Shown: positions 3,533 to 59,612 of the stretch, piece by piece
Numbering within the stretch: the stretch's first letter is position 1
How the letters are laid out: the number at the start of each line of letters is the position of its first letter
Virus record (IMG/VR): IMGVR_UViG_3300049001_000044
Coordinates: 1 to 64,000 of that record
Strand: one strand, 5' to 3'
DNA length: 64,000 bases
The notes under the pieces: generated by a model
Database searches by the model: none
What the model saw: only the letters and a program-made list of their open reading frames with translations
Told to the model about the DNA's origin: nothing
Program-made: the position numbers and the translations under genes

Positions 3533-3576
3533 CTGTGTAGTCCTAGGACTACACAGGTTCGTAATCCTAGGATTAC
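3533..3576. repeat. Two perfect CCTAGG-centred palindromes (24 bp and 16 bp)
   Basis: CTGTGTAGTCCTAGGACTACACAG and GTAATCCTAGGATTAC. Confidence 0.85.
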
Positions 3577-3695
3577 AAAGTGACAATTTGAACTGTTGTC
3601 AGAGTGACAACAAATTTGGTAGAAGAAAGGCCCGTCAAGGGCGCGCACGAAAGCCCCTAAAGGGCTTCGGATAGGTAGGGTGCTGCAGGTGGGGA

Positions 3696-4310
3696 TTAGG
3701 GGGTCTTCCCCTCGAGTTGCGCAATGCGAAGCTGCAGTTGGGCGATCTCTTCGCGGTCAACTTCCTTCATCCGCATTTCGGCGGCCACACGGAGAATCGC
3801 GAGGGCTTCGTCCTCCTCCTTCGCCCAGTACTTCATGATGACTTGCCCATCCTCGTACCGCTTCATCACCCGCTTCTGCTCGAAGTCCACGACGATCCCG
3901 CACCGCTTGATGAGGAGGTAGCGGTCGCCATCGTTCGAGATCGCGTCGTACACACTCCCATCGTGCTTGCGATAGTAGACGATTTCGGGGGCGGTATCAC
4001 TCAGCTGCTCGCCATGGTATTCCTCACCGATTTTGGCCGCGAGGCAGGCGAGGCGAAGGACATCCCGCATCTGCATCTCCTCCACAGTCTCGCGAGGACC
4101 TGAATTGAAGACCAGGTTGGTCAACTTCTCCATCGCCAGCACTTTGTTGCGGTGTACGCCGCGTTCGGATTCCTCGGTCACGGTGAGGCCGGTGGGGATG
4201 TGCGTGATGCGCACTGCCGTATCTGGCGCGTTCACCCAGCCACTGCCACCAGAAGGGCGGTAGGTGTCCATGCGCAGGTCTTTCGGGTCCAGGTGCTGCT
4301 CCATTCTCAT
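3696..4310 (-). CDS. Class I release-factor (RF-1/ArfB-like) domain with degenerate GGQ, fused to an unknown domain
   Basis: DLRMDTYRPSGGSGWVNAPDTAVRITHIPTGLTVTEESERGVHRNK aligns with the RF GGQ domain; GGQ is replaced. Confidence 0.8.
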   Translation of the reverse strand: MRMEQHLDPKDLRMDTYRPSGGSGWVNAPDTAVRITHIPTGLTVTEESERGVHRNKVLAMEKLTNLVFNSGPRETVEEMQMRDVLRLACLAAKIGEEYHGEQLSDTAPEIVYYRKHDGSVYDAISNDGDRYLLIKRCGIVVDFEQKRVMKRYEDGQVIMKYWAKEEDEALAILRVAAEMRMKEVDREEIAQLQLRIAQLEGKTP

Positions 4311-9410: not shown

Positions 9411-9956
9411 TCATTTTCCTCCCCTCAGTTTCTTTGCGTTTTTAAAGGACTTGAATTTTGGAGTGGTGTCGAGTTGCTCAACCACCTCTTTCAATTGGGA
9501 TTTCCAAGCGGGTACCTCGTCCTTCGGCTGCAATCCCCTCTTGATGGCGTCCAACGCTGCAACGCAATCCTCCATCTCGAACATCCCAAAGTGGCATGAG
9601 GAGACGTGGATGTTCATCGCAGCTGCCAAGGACTGATAGGCCAAAGTCCTGCTCATCTTCCCGCTTTGCCAGATCGGATTGAAGAGGTTCTTCACTTCCA
9701 TCCGCAACTTCCTGAGCTTGTTGTTCGCGAGGATTCCCAGAGGGATATTGGTTTCGGGATGCATCCCGATGCAGGCACTGCACTTGAGGCAGACGAAGAT
9801 CCATGGGTACCCACCGTACGAGGTGCCGTTATAGATGAAGGAGTTGTTAGCCATGATGACTTCACCTTCACAATACCTGCACTTCGTCGGCGCGGGCAGC
9901 TTGTCCTTCACCTTCTCAATTGCCTTGGGGTTGGGGTGCCATGGATCGTACGTCAT
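9411..9956 (-). CDS. DUF3268-like zinc-finger protein
   Basis: PTKCRYCEGEV...WIFVCLKCSACIGMHPETNIPLGILAN...LFNPIW. Confidence 0.8.
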   Translation of the reverse strand: MTYDPWHPNPKAIEKVKDKLPAPTKCRYCEGEVIMANNSFIYNGTSYGGYPWIFVCLKCSACIGMHPETNIPLGILANNKLRKLRMEVKNLFNPIWQSGKMSRTLAYQSLAAAMNIHVSSCHFGMFEMEDCVAALDAIKRGLQPKDEVPAWKSQLKEVVEQLDTTPKFKSFKNAKKLRGGK

Positions 9957-46069: not shown

Positions 46070-47680
46070 TTAGAACTCTTGGATCAGCTGCGGAGCCGAG
46101 CTGTCGAAGCCAACAATGTCCAGCATACCCGGATCTTTCGGATCCGCGATGGTGAAGTTGGTGACCGAAGTACCGCACACGATCAGCTTGGACTGACGGT
46201 TGTACTGCTGACGGTAGTCGCGCAGTGCCTGGACGGGCTGCTGACGACCAGCGTAGGTTTCGTTGTCAGTGATGACCACGAACTTGTCTACACCCGACAT
46301 CTTGTGCTCGATTGCGTGGCGCATCGGCAGGGAGCAGTCGGTGGAACCCCAGCTAAAGCGCTGCATGACAGCGAGGACTTGGTCCAGGCGCATGGACGGG
46401 GAAATCTTCAGTTCACCCATGCGGGAGTTGAAGCCACCGATCCAGTAGTTGGGCTCACGCTTTGCAACTGCCAAAGCCATGACTGCTGCAACTTCAGCAG
46501 CGGTGAGGTTAGGTGCGCCGGTGACGCGAGATCCCCACATCGAACCCGAGCAGTCAACGCCGATCAGGTGGCCCTGGCCGGTGGTGTCGACGTAGTTGAA
46601 CGATTCGTAGAACGCGTCGTTCAGTGCATCGAGGATTCGCTGGTCCGGACGCCAGCTCAGGCTACCTTTGTCGCCATGACCTTGCTTGTACTGGTTGAAG
46701 GCGTTGAGGATCGTGATCGGGTGAACACGTCCACGCTTGATCGCTTCCACGTCCGTCAGCTTGGCGATTGCCAGCTTCGAACCTTCCGACAGATTGCCGA
46801 TCACACCGACGTTGGTCAGTTGACCCAGCTTTCGGATCAGAGCGGTCATGCCCATGTTCGGAAGCAGAGCATTCCAAACGTCGACATCACGCTGCAGTTC
46901 GGTTGGGATCATCTCCCACGACAGATCACGGTTGGACTCGATCAGCTGGATGGCCAGCTTCTTGTCCGCGCCGGCACGCTTCAGGGTTTCGAAGTCGACC
47001 AGCAGTTGTGGTACTTGCGCACCAGCTGCGATCGCCTCTGCACCTTTCGTTGCGTAGCGGAACATTGCGTTCTGCAGCTCGTTCTGCGGCTTAGCGTGAG
47101 CCAGACGGAGAACGTCGCGGTGAGACCAGCCATCACGCTGTTGGTACTTCAGCATCTGCAGGGCCAGCTTGTCTTCACGGCGGTTGGTGTACCACGCAGA
47201 GATACCGCGCTTTGCAGCAGCGTTCCACTTGCCCATCGAGTCGATGGCGGAGACGAACTGGAACAGCATGGTGCCAGTACGAGCGACTTTCGGCAGAGCT
47301 GCGTAAGCAGCCGAGACAGTGTCAGGGTTGCCGTTGATAGCGGCGAGAGCCAGAGCGAAGACCGCAGGGTCATTCTTCGGCGCACGGCCTGCTTCGGAGA
47401 TTTCGACGATGCGATTGACGGTACGGATACCATCGTTCTTGATGCAGTCGATGACGTTCTTAGCCGCCTTAATGGTCAGCTCTTTCTTGCCCGCGTAGTA
47501 CGAAGGCGTGTCAGAACCCAGGATCAGAAAGCGATCGAGGTAGCCCCACATGTCCAGTTGGAACGTGAAGCCGCCTGCGCTGTTACGCACCATCTCACTC
47601 TCACGACCAGGGATCGGAGCAGTTTGTGGGGTTGCGCGGGTGTTAACCTTCGGTGCGAGGATATCAGTGTAAGACGACAT
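46070..47680 (-). CDS. rsr: Ro60 / TROVE-domain RNA-binding protein (Rsr ortholog)
   Basis: RNSAGGFTF...RFLILGS...YYA; KYQQRDGWSHRDVLRLAH; LPNMGMTALIRKLG; vWA MIDAS VDCSGSM; ITDNET; LDIVGFDS. Confidence 0.95.
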   Translation of the reverse strand: MSSYTDILAPKVNTRATPQTAPIPGRESEMVRNSAGGFTFQLDMWGYLDRFLILGSDTPSYYAGKKELTIKAAKNVIDCIKNDGIRTVNRIVEISEAGRAPKNDPAVFALALAAINGNPDTVSAAYAALPKVARTGTMLFQFVSAIDSMGKWNAAAKRGISAWYTNRREDKLALQMLKYQQRDGWSHRDVLRLAHAKPQNELQNAMFRYATKGAEAIAAGAQVPQLLVDFETLKRAGADKKLAIQLIESNRDLSWEMIPTELQRDVDVWNALLPNMGMTALIRKLGQLTNVGVIGNLSEGSKLAIAKLTDVEAIKRGRVHPITILNAFNQYKQGHGDKGSLSWRPDQRILDALNDAFYESFNYVDTTGQGHLIGVDCSGSMWGSRVTGAPNLTAAEVAAVMALAVAKREPNYWIGGFNSRMGELKISPSMRLDQVLAVMQRFSWGSTDCSLPMRHAIEHKMSGVDKFVVITDNETYAGRQQPVQALRDYRQQYNRQSKLIVCGTSVTNFTIADPKDPGMLDIVGFDSSAPQLIQEF

Positions 47681-47736: not shown

Positions 47737-48089
47737 TTCAGTGAGGCTAGCAAAGGGTGTTGTCGGAGATTTCAGCTGCTCTTCATCTCTTTCGAGTCTT
47801 GCGAAGGGCAACCTACACTTCAAAATTCCGTTAAGATAGAGTTGAAGTTCTCACGGCCTGTTTCATGGCTTATTCAGTTTGACGACGCTGACAAACGCTC
47901 ATGGATAACGTTCACATGAGAGGACGACCACCGATTGGGCGAGGACAACGATGATAGCCTCCGACCATGCCTAACTTAGTGAGCTCGAACGGTGATAAGC
48001 ACCTTGCTCCTAAGGTTTACACAATCGAAACCGCTTACAGTTCACTTGGCTATTTTAGGTAACCAACAACTACGGCTAGCTCGACTGAA
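47737..48089 (-). ncRNA. ~350-nt Y-RNA-like element directly upstream of Ro60
   Basis: Ends pair as GCUAG[C]CGU-A-GUUGUUGG-UUACCU with CCGACAAC-ACCCU-UUG-CUAGC, extended by UUCAGU-GAG/CUC-ACUGAA; TACAAT -10 just upstream; U-rich 3' flank. Confidence 0.75.
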
Positions 48090-48177: not shown

Positions 48178-48750
48178 TTAACCTGCCGCGTTCTCTTCTT
48201 TGACTTCCTCGTCTTCTGGGAACTCCAGACGGAAGAGGATGCCAGGCGGGATCAGCATGTGACCATCAGGAATTGCGTAGGTGGCCATCTGCTTGGGGTT
48301 GATCGTGTCTTCAAAGTAGGCAGTGACCAAGTTGCCTTGAGGACTGCGTACTTTGATCCATTCGTAAATCTCCGCATCGTAGTAATGGCCGATGGGAGCA
48401 GGTGGGAGTTCCTCGATAGTGAACTCCATCTGCATTGCGGGATTTTCAGTTGGCTCTGGCTCTTCGACTTTCGCCATCCTCTTCTGTTGCTGTGCGATGA
48501 CGTTTTGAGCATCATCGTACATGAGTTGCGGATTGAAGCCGTAGACGACCCAAACAATTGCAACCTCTAGCAACTTGAAGAGGAAGAAGACACCAAGAGC
48601 TGACACCACGGCGAGGATAATCCATTCAAAAGCGGTACCATGCGGAAGCCAGTTGTACACTCCGAAAGGAACACCGAAAAGAGTGAGAAGGGCTGCAAGT
48701 CTACGCAGTGCAACTACCTTCTTCAGGCGTGGAGTCAGTTCATATTCCAT
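48178..48750 (-). CDS. Membrane protein
   Basis: Two N-terminal hydrophobic helices. Confidence 0.8.
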   Translation of the reverse strand: MEYELTPRLKKVVALRRLAALLTLFGVPFGVYNWLPHGTAFEWIILAVVSALGVFFLFKLLEVAIVWVVYGFNPQLMYDDAQNVIAQQQKRMAKVEEPEPTENPAMQMEFTIEELPPAPIGHYYDAEIYEWIKVRSPQGNLVTAYFEDTINPKQMATYAIPDGHMLIPPGILFRLEFPEDEEVKEENAAG

Positions 48751-49322
48751 TAAGTGAGATCCTTTTTGATGCGGCTGTTGTCAGGGAGGAAGTCGATTAA
48801 GAAGTCCATCTGGTCTTTCAAGATGTTTCTGTTTGCCAAGATCAAGTGCTCTGCACGGGTAGGAACGTATGGCACGTAAAGCAGTTCCATCCGAGCTTCC
48901 TTCAAGGACTTGTCGTCCTTGTACTGGTTGCAACGACGGCAGCAGGTCACCACGTTCATCCAAGTATCCTTACCACCCTTCGATCTTGGAACGATGTGGT
49001 CACGGGTAAGGTTCGTATCGGTGAAGACACCACCGCAGTAACCACACAGATGGCGGTCACGACGGAACAACTCGCGGTTGCTCAGTGATGGTGGACGATT
49101 GCGACGCTTACCGGCTGCTCCCTTCAGAGCAATGATCGACGAAGTCTTGATGATCGACGTACGACCCGTGACCGCATTTTCGCCACCACGGAATTCGAAT
49201 TCAACTTCACCAAGTGACCATGCAATCAGATCCTTCGCCTGGTAGACGACGGCATCTTGCCATGTGATCCATTTGTTTGGTTGACCTTGTGAGTCAAGCT
49301 GCAGAATTTGTGGGTAGCTCAT
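48750..49322 (-). CDS. HNH endonuclease
   Basis: LFRRDRHLCGYCG...TRDHIVPRSKGGKDTWMNVVTCCRRCN. Confidence 0.92.
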   Translation of the reverse strand: MSYPQILQLDSQGQPNKWITWQDAVVYQAKDLIAWSLGEVEFEFRGGENAVTGRTSIIKTSSIIALKGAAGKRRNRPPSLSNRELFRRDRHLCGYCGGVFTDTNLTRDHIVPRSKGGKDTWMNVVTCCRRCNQYKDDKSLKEARMELLYVPYVPTRAEHLILANRNILKDQMDFLIDFLPDNSRIKKDLT

Positions 49323-58407: not shown

Positions 58408-58590
58408 TGGTGTCTCCTGTGGGAATTGAACCCACTCTATTCATTCTTAGTAAATGACAGTGCCCTAAACCATCTCCACTCCACCCTCGCGGATGAGTAT
58501 CGGCCGATTCCAACAACCGAAATGATGAAGCTTTGAAAGGTTTAGTCCCGCTCTGCTCTAGAATCAGAGCAAGCCTTACACTAAGGAGAC
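58408..58590 (-). ncRNA. tRNA-like RNA with a 114-nt structured D-loop
   Basis: GUCUCCU/AGGAGAC acceptor plus ACCA, GUGU/GCAC D stem, UUCAAUU T loop; insertion 58464-58577. Confidence 0.75.
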
Positions 58591-58598
58591 GATGTTCT

Positions 58599-58728
58599 TG
58601 GCGCCGATGGATAGGATTCGAACCTACCGACCACCCTCGAGATAGGAGATAACCATCCACGGGCGGTTGCAATACAACAAAGATTGCGGACGATGTTTTA
58701 GGTGCTCTAACCACTGAGCTACATCGGC
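58599..58728 (-). ncRNA. tRNA-Y RNA chimera: tRNA acceptor, D and T arms with a permuted Y module replacing the anticodon arm
   Basis: GCCGAUG/CAUCGGC-G-CCA; insert AUCGUCCGC-AAUCU-UUG-UUGU-AUU-GCAA[C]CGC-CC-GUGGAUGGU-UAUCU. Confidence 0.75.
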
Positions 58729-58779
58729 ATTTTGGAAGTGATGAGTAATTATACTCTGTAGTGCATGCTACTAAAACTG

Positions 58780-58941: not shown

Positions 58942-59013
58942 TGGAGCCTCGAACTGGAGTCGAACCAGTCATTTGACCTTCGGACGGTCAATGCTAAGTC
59001 CCTTAGTCGAGAC
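58942..59013 (-). tRNA. Compact atypical tRNA, anticodon CCG (Arg)
   Basis: 7-bp acceptor, no 8/9 linker, 4-bp D stem with 5-nt loop, 6-bp anticodon stem, 3-nt variable loop. Confidence 0.6.
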
Positions 59014-59173
59014 AAACTTCTTCGAACTTACCTGCCTCGATGGCGTCAAGCGCGCGGTTAATCGCGGCGGCTATCTGTTCAGGGGTTGCGTTTGGATTGG
59101 TGCCAGGAAAGATGTTGAATTTCCTAACGTCCATCTCAACCAAACGCGCATGCAGTTTAGTAAGTTCGGTCAT
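59003..59173 (-). CDS. Small hypothetical protein (56 aa)
   Basis: MTELTKLHARLVEMDVRKFNIFPG...; stop lies inside the 5' end of the compact tRNA. Confidence 0.55.
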   Translation of the reverse strand: MTELTKLHARLVEMDVRKFNIFPGTNPNATPEQIAAAINRALDAIEAGKFEEVCLD

Positions 59174-59199: not shown

Positions 59200-59272
59200 G
59201 CCAACAAAAGAGTGGTAGACGGGATTGGGTTTGAGTAAAAGTCAAAGATAACCATCGTACCTGTCGGTTGGC
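59200..59272 (-). ncRNA. Minimal 73-nt Y RNA
   Basis: GCCAA[C]CGA-CA-GGUA-C-GAUGG-UUAUCU, pyrimidine-rich loop, then CCGUC-UACC-ACUCUU-UUG-UUGGC. Confidence 0.78.
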
Positions 59273-59277
59273 AAACT

Positions 59278-59351
59278 TGGTGCCCAATGTAGGAATCGAA
59301 CCTACGCCTGTTGATTACGAAACAACTAGACTACCACTATCCTAAGTGGGC
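59278..59351 (-). tRNA. tRNA-Thr(CGT)
   Basis: Cloverleaf, loop UUCGUAA. Confidence 0.85.
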
Positions 59352-59356
59352 AAATC

Positions 59357-59429
59357 TGGTACCGCGTGAAGGAGTCGAACCTTCTTAATCGGGCTTCGTA
59401 GACCCAACACCGGTTCCGCCGGCCGCGGT
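59357..59429 (-). tRNA. Compact atypical tRNA, anticodon ACG (Arg)
   Basis: Same architecture as 58942..59013: CCGG/CCGG D stem with 5-nt loop, 6-bp anticodon stem. Confidence 0.6.
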
Positions 59430-59612
59430 ATTGTCTTGTGTATCCAGTTCATCCACACCGTTAAAGAGCCACTCACTGCAGTCTTCGCTTAAGTGCATGC
59501 CTGGGATTTCTACTGCTGTTCTGTTGTCGTCATCATCTACGTGAATGATGACGATTGGTCCTGCAATTCCTACGATACCTAGTTCGAACATTCTAGTCAT
59601 GCCACTCACCAT
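59385..59612 (-). CDS. Hypothetical protein (3' end overlaps the compact tRNA)
   Basis: Acidic ORF filling the gap; start uncertain. Confidence 0.45.
   Translation of the reverse strand: MVSGMTRMFELGIVGIAGPIVIIHVDDDDNRTAVEIPGMHLSEDCSEWLFNGVDELDTQDNTAAGGTGVGSTKPD

Follow-up and report, generated by a model that had tools for sequence, protein, structure and literature searches.

The stretch of DNA analyzed in this work, hereafter the window, comprises positions 1 to 64,000 of the IMG/VR virus record IMGVR_UViG_3300049001_000044, which are the initial 64 kb of a virus genome of 343,229 bp that has direct terminal repeats, is estimated to be 100% complete and was recovered whole in one soil metagenome run. 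This phage carries 52 transfer RNA (tRNA) genes, nearly all of them in two arrays on the minus strand, located at 58-62 kb and at 206-214 kb. In the first array, an element of 73 nt (59200-59272, minus strand) follows the gene for tRNA-Thr(CGU) (59278-59351, minus strand), which is its upstream neighbor in the same direction of transcription, is called by both ARAGORN and Rfam, and ends in CCA. On the same strand, 11.5 kb from the element, lies rsr (46070-47680), a full-length gene for a Ro60 orthologue of 536 aa with the TROVE and Ro60 vWA domains. A first-pass annotation made from the sequence alone had described the 73-nt element as a minimal Y RNA of the vertebrate type placed inside the tRNA array, and this element is the subject of the present analysis. 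When the region and the element were compared with 50,697 cultured phage records by megablast and blastn, no cultured phage similar to the region at the DNA level was found; the short matches obtained were all within coding sequence and none of them was a true homologue.

The minus strand at 59200-59272 reads GCCAACCGACAGGUACGAUGGUUAUCUUUGACUUUUACUCAAACCCAAUCCCGUCUACCACUCUUUUGUUGGC and contains the string CCGACAGGUACGAUGGUUAUCU quoted in the first-pass annotation. As had been noted there, the element begins five nucleotides past the CCA of the tRNA: the spacer AGUUU (59273-59277, read from 59277 to 59273) parts this CCA from G1 of the element at 59272. The computed fold of the 73-nt RNA has a minimum free energy of -18.2 kcal/mol (z = -3.13; 2 of 200 shuffled sequences fold equally well), and shows the three parts that had been proposed, i.e. 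a helix with a bulged C, an upper stem and a pyrimidine-rich loop. From the ends inward, a 6-bp terminal stem (GCCAAC/GUUGGC) is followed by the bulged C7, the pairs GA/UC and GGUA/UACC, a second bulged C, the upper helix GAUGG/CCGUC, and a loop of 29 nt that is 69% pyrimidine and includes neither a T nor a D arm, so that the tRNA-like module is indeed absent. On the minus strand, the 5' strand of the terminal stem occupies positions 59267-59272, C7, G8 and A9 lie at 59264-59266, the GAUGG strand together with the UUAUC that starts the loop at 59247-59256, the CCGUC strand at 59218-59222, and the UUUU run with the 3' strand GUUGGC at 59200-59209. The terminal helix can be written as GCCAAC-C-GA ... 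UUUUGUUGGC, with the bulged C within a CCGA/UUG-type stem as in vertebrate-type Y RNAs. In the 343-kb genome there are just two occurrences of the 11-mer GATGGTTATCT, and both are on the tRNA strand of the array in the window.

Homologues of the element were sought by pattern scans of IMG/VR followed by a structure filter, and ten clear homologues were obtained. The exact pattern CCGNNNGGTNNGATGGTTATCT gave only chance matches to coding sequences of viral contigs (e.g. pgsA-like genes), and a looser pattern yielded mostly chance matches, for which structural filtering was needed. A homologue was found in the tRNA array of the related 358-kb phage G001 (Rsr 76% identical), and both of its helices show compensatory changes. 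From an independent MAFFT alignment of the ten homologues, RNAalifold recovered both helices; among the outer three pairs of the terminal stem none is broken, and all of them covary (GC/UA; AU/CG/GC; CG/GC). A covariance model, R1, was built from the element and nine homologues using only array-borne copies; its calibration was short and its E-values are in consequence rough. In related uncultivated jumbo phages, R1 found 45 distinct members at 31 loci (E <= 0.001), and the element itself scores 57.2 bits (E ~1e-10). In the alignment of the 45 members, 95.7% of the pair cells are paired and double changes are present in 11 of the 14 pairs; the compensatory cells amount to 173, compared with 55 +/- 6 in shuffles (0 of 500 shuffles matching the observed value), and pairing falls to 29-54% when the partner columns are slid by one to three positions. 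This alignment was fitted to R1 and hence leans toward the structure; nonetheless, the structure is secure because the effect is large and the MAFFT alignment gave the same result independently. The upper helix shows compensatory variants among homologues, such as GAAGG/CCUUC, GUUGG/CCGAC and UACGG/CCGUG, and the AAC of the terminal stem is invariant. Among the unpaired positions, C7 and G8 (in 45 of 45 members), the UUAUC at the start of the loop, and the UUU ahead of the 3' stem strand are also invariant, which suggests sequence-specific recognition, and these motifs are maintained across phages with Rsr proteins that are only 54-76% identical. These results identify the element as a stem-bulge-stem RNA that is conserved and covaries, and not as a chance structure. 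The array in the window includes several aberrant tRNA-like sequences that are not called by ARAGORN, and these would fit the idea that the element is a functionless, decayed remnant of a tRNA gene or of one of the tRNA-shaped genes described below, or even a chance hairpin; given 45 homologues with such a degree of pairing, their compensatory changes, and the invariance of the motifs in phages with divergent Rsr proteins, we consider this origin extremely improbable.

The sequence AACCG-N3-12-GGTTAYC occurs nine times in the 343 kb of the genome, always on the minus (tRNA) strand and always inside the two tRNA arrays; it was found neither on the other strand nor outside the arrays, and its chance expectation is about 0.4 per strand. 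Three of the nine copies are minimal, or type A (59200-59272, and genome positions 210961-211025 and 211306-211372), three have a longer loop (genome positions 211421-211533, 212966-213082 and 213392-213513), some of them with a T-arm-like hairpin, GGUUCGAAUCC, and the other three are shaped like tRNAs and were named type B (58599-58728 in the window, and around 211.6 kb and 211.8 kb of the genome). In the second array, outside the window, the copies of the module are interleaved with 23 tRNAs. The spacers that separate the copies from the flanking tRNAs measure 5-11 nt, as do those between tRNAs, which suggests that they are co-transcribed and released by the tRNA-processing enzymes; the release of the element by tRNA processing, already put forward from its closeness to the tRNA CCA, is thus plausible. 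At its 3' side this particular copy is followed, 26 nt on, by a small ATG-initiated open reading frame (ORF) of 56 aa (59003-59173) rather than by a tRNA, and its 3' end is undefined, with neither a tRNA nor a terminator downstream. Both features could be expected of a cis-acting element of the array transcript, such as a processing spacer, an attenuator or the 5' leader of this ORF. The scan for promoters and terminators around the element gave results at chance level, without a terminator-like U tract, and the homologues precede tRNAs and not this ORF. In addition, the invariant loop bases, the covarying stems, the multiple copies and the rsr-adjacent matches described below conform to the pattern of a stable RNA gene, and we therefore judge a cis-acting role to be quite improbable. 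On similar grounds (no U tract, homologues ahead of tRNAs, and covariation), the readings of the element as a terminator, an ORF leader or a tRNA pseudogene were rejected.

The 5' strings of the human Y RNAs hY1 and hY4 that the first-pass annotation had given are correct, and both appear verbatim in the literature. In the alignment of the element with hY1, 19 of 23 columns are identical and none of 2000 shuffles reaches the score; for the alignment with hY4 the score is reached by 7 of 2000 shuffles. The vertebrate RNAs share with the element the terminal stem with a bulged C in CCGA, the upper stem, and a pyrimidine-rich loop that starts with UUAUC. In contrast, the element ends in GUUGGC, without a 3' oligo-U or La site, and, unlike the vertebrate Y RNAs made by RNA polymerase III, it is found in the context of a bacterial-type tRNA operon or array. 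The motifs GGUCCGA in vertebrates and GNCGAAN0-1G/CGAA in phages and bacteria have been named as Ro60-binding motifs (PMC4201824; PMC12135203); by analogy, C7, G8 and A9 of the element would be equivalent to the CCGA of GGUCCGA and to the CGAA motif, and could represent a putative contact for Ro60. The second shared feature is the junction at which the GG of the upper helix gives way to the loop, here written GG-UUAUC; it is preceded by CCG(A) at a distance of about 8-10 nt, and is not among the Ro60-binding sites named in PMC4201824 and PMC12135203.

This pair of motifs was also observed in RNAs encoded next to the Ro genes of actinophages. For mycobacteriophage Catera, used as a positive control, Rfam reports a YrlA match upstream of the Ro gene (36 bits, E = 1.3e-5). 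The YrlA RNA of Catera carries GCCGAGAGUUUGUCGG-UUACCUC, a neighboring hairpin devoid of a tRNA module carries GGCCGAAGGCUCGUCGG-UUAUC, and the neighbor RNAs carry CCGA...GUCGG-UUA(U/C)C (the RNAs of this locus lie at 3575-3660, 3690-3847 and 3866-3945; here and below, coordinates are those of the fetched loci). In the Gordonia phage BearBQ a pair of RNAs (1235-1375 and 1385-1470) lies upstream of the Ro gene, as in Catera, and the second of them, GGACUGCGGGC-CGGAU-UCCAGUCGG-UUAUC...CCGGUUGGA-...-GCCCGCAGUCC, has the architecture of the 73-nt element. The Streptomyces phage Watermoore has GGUCGAAAG...GUCGG-UUAUC followed by a T arm, also upstream of the Ro gene (~600-700). In general, two or three RNAs are found upstream of Ro at these loci, all of them with (G/A)UCGG-UUA(U/C)C about 10 nt after CG(A/G)A. 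As judged from these sequences, a C-G-(A) after the terminal stem together with the GG-UUAUC junction, the two invariant motifs of the new family, is the signature of the Ro-linked RNAs of three actinophage lineages and of the 5' arm of hY1 and hY4; the actinophage RNAs were recovered neither by BLAST nor by R1. The label of vertebrate type given to the element is therefore sound in that the CCGA...GG-UUAUC signature is present as in hY1 and hY4, and is too narrow in that phage RNAs of the YrlA/YrlB type share it and the Rfam model RF00019 does not match the element. The resemblance to the vertebrate RNAs is the retention of features that are common to Y RNAs generally.

A second class of Y RNAs that are not tRNA-like and have pyrimidine-rich loops is already known, the YrlB/Yrn2 class (Chen et al., PMC4201824). 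YrlB from S. Typhimurium and M. smegmatis, Yrn2 from D. radiodurans, and the second RNA of Catera and BearBQ form, as the element does, a long hairpin from their 5' and 3' ends, with CG(A/G)A in a bulge or internal loop, an upper helix ending in GG and followed by UUAUC, and a small pyrimidine-rich loop; moreover, Ro60 is encoded in the genome both in these systems and in this phage. The fold, the pyrimidine content of the loop and the encoded Rsr that characterize minimal Y RNAs of the YrlB/Yrn2 type (PMC4201824) are all found for the element. Nonetheless, RNAs of this type lie between YrlA and rsr, whereas the element is located in a tRNA array, and the element differs from them in having a short terminal stem (6 bp) with an invariant AAC/GUU and in belonging to a genome with nine copies of the module. 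YrlA (RF02553) has in common with the element the stem of the Rsr-binding type and the GG-UUAYC junction, and differs in the tRNA-like domain present in its loop. For the Thermus phage phiLo, which encodes Yrl1 and Yrl2, a complex of the phage Ro60, the Y RNA and the host PNPase has been shown (PMC12135203). Yrl1 and Yrl2 are, like the element, phage-encoded stem-bulge-stem RNAs with C-G-A at positions ~7-10; in contrast, they are placed directly upstream of the Ro60 gene and outside tRNA arrays, and the Ro60 protein of phiLo is very divergent from that of the phage studied here (E = 3e-10).

Among proteins of the PDB, the phage Rsr matches Rsr from D. radiodurans with E = 9e-104 and vertebrate Ro60 proteins with E ~1e-101 and 1e-95, and is thus about equally similar to both. 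This protein is the presumed partner of the element. Classically, Y RNA genes are located upstream of the rsr/Ro60 gene (PMC4201824; PMC12135203), and we compared 23 loci of Rsr relatives fetched from IMG/VR. Although R1 was built from array-borne copies, 14 distinct relatives, among them a 2.3-kb contig from a metagenome-assembled genome (MAG), have a match to it on the strand of rsr, 400-900 nt upstream of this gene. The consensus of these matches is UGGAAC-C-GAUCGG-NNNGG-UUAUC ... CCNNN-CC-ACUCUUUGUUCC, in which the upper helix covaries freely. A search of genome contigs with Rsr gave one 2.3-kb contig only, which is binned with a cyanobacterial MAG and is probably phage, and hence offers no clue about the host. 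In the phage that carries the element, a gap of 500 nt upstream of rsr, between this gene and the ORF at 48178-48750, accommodates an RNA candidate of ~345 nt (47738-48082, minus strand). Its ends carry the same module, GCUAGC-C-GU...GUUGG-UUACC ... CCGACA...UUUGCUAGC, with a variable insert of ~280 nt between them, and are conserved in phage G001 (locus 9548-9915), where the terminal stem covaries. The fold of the whole candidate is not significant (z = -1.36), and we tentatively propose that this RNA shares the Y module. Two genes upstream of rsr there is an ORF for an HNH endonuclease (48753-49322, minus strand).

The type B copies bear on the relationship between the module and YrlA. The copy in the window (58599-58728) has a 7-bp acceptor stem, a D arm, a T arm and an encoded CCA, and its anticodon arm is replaced by a loop-closed Y module, in which a YCGUC/GAUGG helix is followed by a UUGUUG-loop-CAAC-C-G stem. 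Twelve type B homologues (at loci that include L179, L172, L045, L082, L097, L169, L171, L173 and L175) have perfect but differing 7-bp acceptor stems as well as D and T arms, and CCA is often encoded. ARAGORN, Rfam tRNA and Rfam YrlA gave no match for type B. Type B and YrlA share the V hairpin, the T arm, the acceptor, the D arm and a UAAAC linker; in type B the ends of the molecule lie at the acceptor stem, with CCA, and the Y stem is closed by a loop, whereas YrlA shows the reverse arrangement. The modules of type B thus follow the order of a circularly permuted YrlA. When type B was permuted its score against Catera YrlA lay ~7 standard deviations above shuffles, and in the native order it was at the null level. 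YrlA of M. smegmatis is cleaved by RNase P in the acceptor loop and receives CCA in vivo (PMC4201824), and type B represents this processed form in one piece. In a wastewater RNA-seq run, a 151-nt contig is 100% identical over 58611-58736 and leaves the flanks uncovered, which hints that type B is expressed.

Several results weigh against the identification of the element as a Y RNA. The search with the Rfam Y_RNA model that the first-pass annotation had recommended (RF00019, threshold 38 bits) gave no match at E <= 10 in a 96-nt stretch, the array region or the whole 343-kb genome, and YrlA (RF02553) had no match in the array even at E <= 10; Rfam as a whole, applied at the gathering threshold and at E <= 10 to the window, the 96-nt stretch, the rsr region and the rsr loci of three relatives, returned tRNAs only. 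The binding motif GNCGAAN0-1G is partly matched by the element in AACCGACAG, where C-G-A is present and the first G and the second A are not, and the base after the invariant CCG varies, being A in about a third of the family. With respect to location, the element is outside the usual distance of ~2 kb that YrlA and YrlB keep from rsr, and R1 has no match adjoining rsr in this phage genome. Four large partial relatives have members of the family and no TROVE gene in the available sequence. To these points must be added the undefined 3' end mentioned above and the sequencing data. None of the runs listed for the element is an RNA run, contigs matching the region gave no transcript ends, and in the RNA-seq run with the type B contig no contig covers 59200-59272, although contigs cannot prove absence.

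Part of this evidence would be accounted for if the element were a structured RNA, conserved in the tRNA arrays of phages, with a partner other than Ro60, for instance a tRNA-processing or tRNA-modifying enzyme, or if it acted as a decoy for a host nuclease that targets tRNAs, its Y-like appearance being then the outcome of shared ancestry or convergence without binding to Rsr. Consistent with this, all nine copies of the module are in tRNA arrays and none adjoins rsr, several large partial relatives without a TROVE gene in the available sequence have copies, and the invariant GG-UUAUC falls outside the named Ro60-binding sites. However, these relatives are only 45-80% complete, R1 also has matches directly upstream of rsr in 14 other relatives, the RNA candidate upstream of the phage's own rsr ends in the same module, and both motifs recur in the Ro-linked RNAs from three lineages of actinophages; a partner different from Ro60 hence seems unlikely to us. 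The covariation, the encoded Rsr, the rsr-linked homologues and the actinophage motifs make a minimal Y RNA inside the tRNA array, as first suggested, the best-supported reading in silico. In our view, the element is probably the gene for a minimal small Y RNA similar to YrlB/Yrn2, with a long hairpin, a pyrimidine-rich loop and no tRNA module, that belongs to a divergent family from uncultivated soil and environmental jumbo phages encoding Ro60/Rsr. Given that Y RNAs as such are already known, what is new here is best classed as a subfamily, its genomic context, its high copy number, and the tRNA-shaped topology among the paralogues.

With the element taken as a Y RNA gene, a mechanism can be outlined. 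It would be transcribed together with the tRNA array from the minus strand; its 5' end would be set by the 3' maturation of tRNA-Thr 5 nt upstream, and the 3' ends of the paralogues by RNase P cutting at the tRNA 5-11 nt downstream, as their spacing suggests. The RNA would then adopt the stem, bulged-C, stem fold that is revealed by covariation, and the AAC-C-G/UUU-GUU bulged helix may dock on the outside of the ring formed by the phage Rsr, by analogy with the CCGA/CGAA motif in the Xenopus, Deinococcus and Thermus-phage complexes. The GG-UUAUC junction and the U/C-rich loop could serve as a gate to the cavity of Rsr, or link this protein to an exoribonuclease of the host, for instance PNPase. 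The loop domains of the nine array paralogues and of the larger rsr-upstream candidate are plain, T-arm-bearing, a whole tRNA body, or the 280-nt insert, and this variety would provide a single Rsr with several adaptors, plausibly to survey or protect structured RNAs, tRNAs included, in the course of infection. Genes for PNPase and RtcB were not found in the phage genome, and two genes for Rnl2-type RNA ligases are present; a role with the host PNPase, as in the Thermus phage phiLo, or in RNA repair or surveillance is in consequence plausible. The ligase genes are located at genome positions 70084-70551 and 305954-306466, both on the minus strand, one of them ~8 kb beyond the first tRNA array.

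Y RNAs are difficult to detect by homology, and to our knowledge those from bacteria and phages have so far been sought only beside the Ro60 gene. The family described here is missed entirely by Rfam, whereas R1 recovers 45 members; it lives within tRNA arrays, tens of kilobases from rsr and with ~10 copies per genome, which indicates that Y RNA genes can be cassettes that phages carry within arrays of tRNA genes. A single module links three topologies (the open hairpin, YrlA, and the tRNA-shaped form in which the Y stem is closed), and this link bears on the origin of Y RNAs from tRNAs. The junction GG-UUAUC, being common with human Y RNAs, is a candidate for a role in binding Ro60 or a partner, and these phages offer a system for probing the roles of phage Ro60 ribonucleoproteins, e.g. 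the co-option of the host PNPase or the surveillance of tRNAs in infection. A bolder and rather speculative possibility is that this clade of Ro60-encoding jumbo phages has made Y RNAs into tRNA-array cassettes that are matured by the tRNA machinery, and has diversified them to ~10 adaptors per genome, including tRNA-shaped forms with CCA, so that the phage Ro60 ribonucleoprotein would be a tRNA-guarding or decoy system against host defenses that cleave tRNAs, and GG-UUAUC a universal element of Y RNAs. If so, tRNA-shaped Y RNAs with an acceptor end and CCA could be charged, modified or mistaken for tRNA.

Other tRNA-like sequences were observed on the minus strand of the window. A sequence with a CCA end (59360-59430), placed between tRNA-Thr and an ORF, is missed by ARAGORN and detected by Rfam only as a weak match to tRNA-Sec (26 bits); this may be an atypical gene similar to tRNA-Arg(ACG). 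A sequence of 183 nt (58410-58592), which is called by neither ARAGORN nor Rfam, has the acceptor stem GUCUCCU/AGGAGAC followed by ACCA, together with a T arm and a hairpin similar to an anticodon arm, whose loop includes CUA and would read amber; an insertion of ~105 nt occupies the expected position of the D loop, and the fold is strong (z = -4.66). Lastly, a tRNA-shaped RNA at 62898-63030 matches the Rfam tRNA model with 36 bits and has a large insertion; its anticodon arm is a hairpin of ~65 nt with GGCCGAAGA, which matches the Y RNA motif GNCGAAN0-1G, and this RNA could represent another type of tRNA/Y hybrid or a tRNA with an intron.
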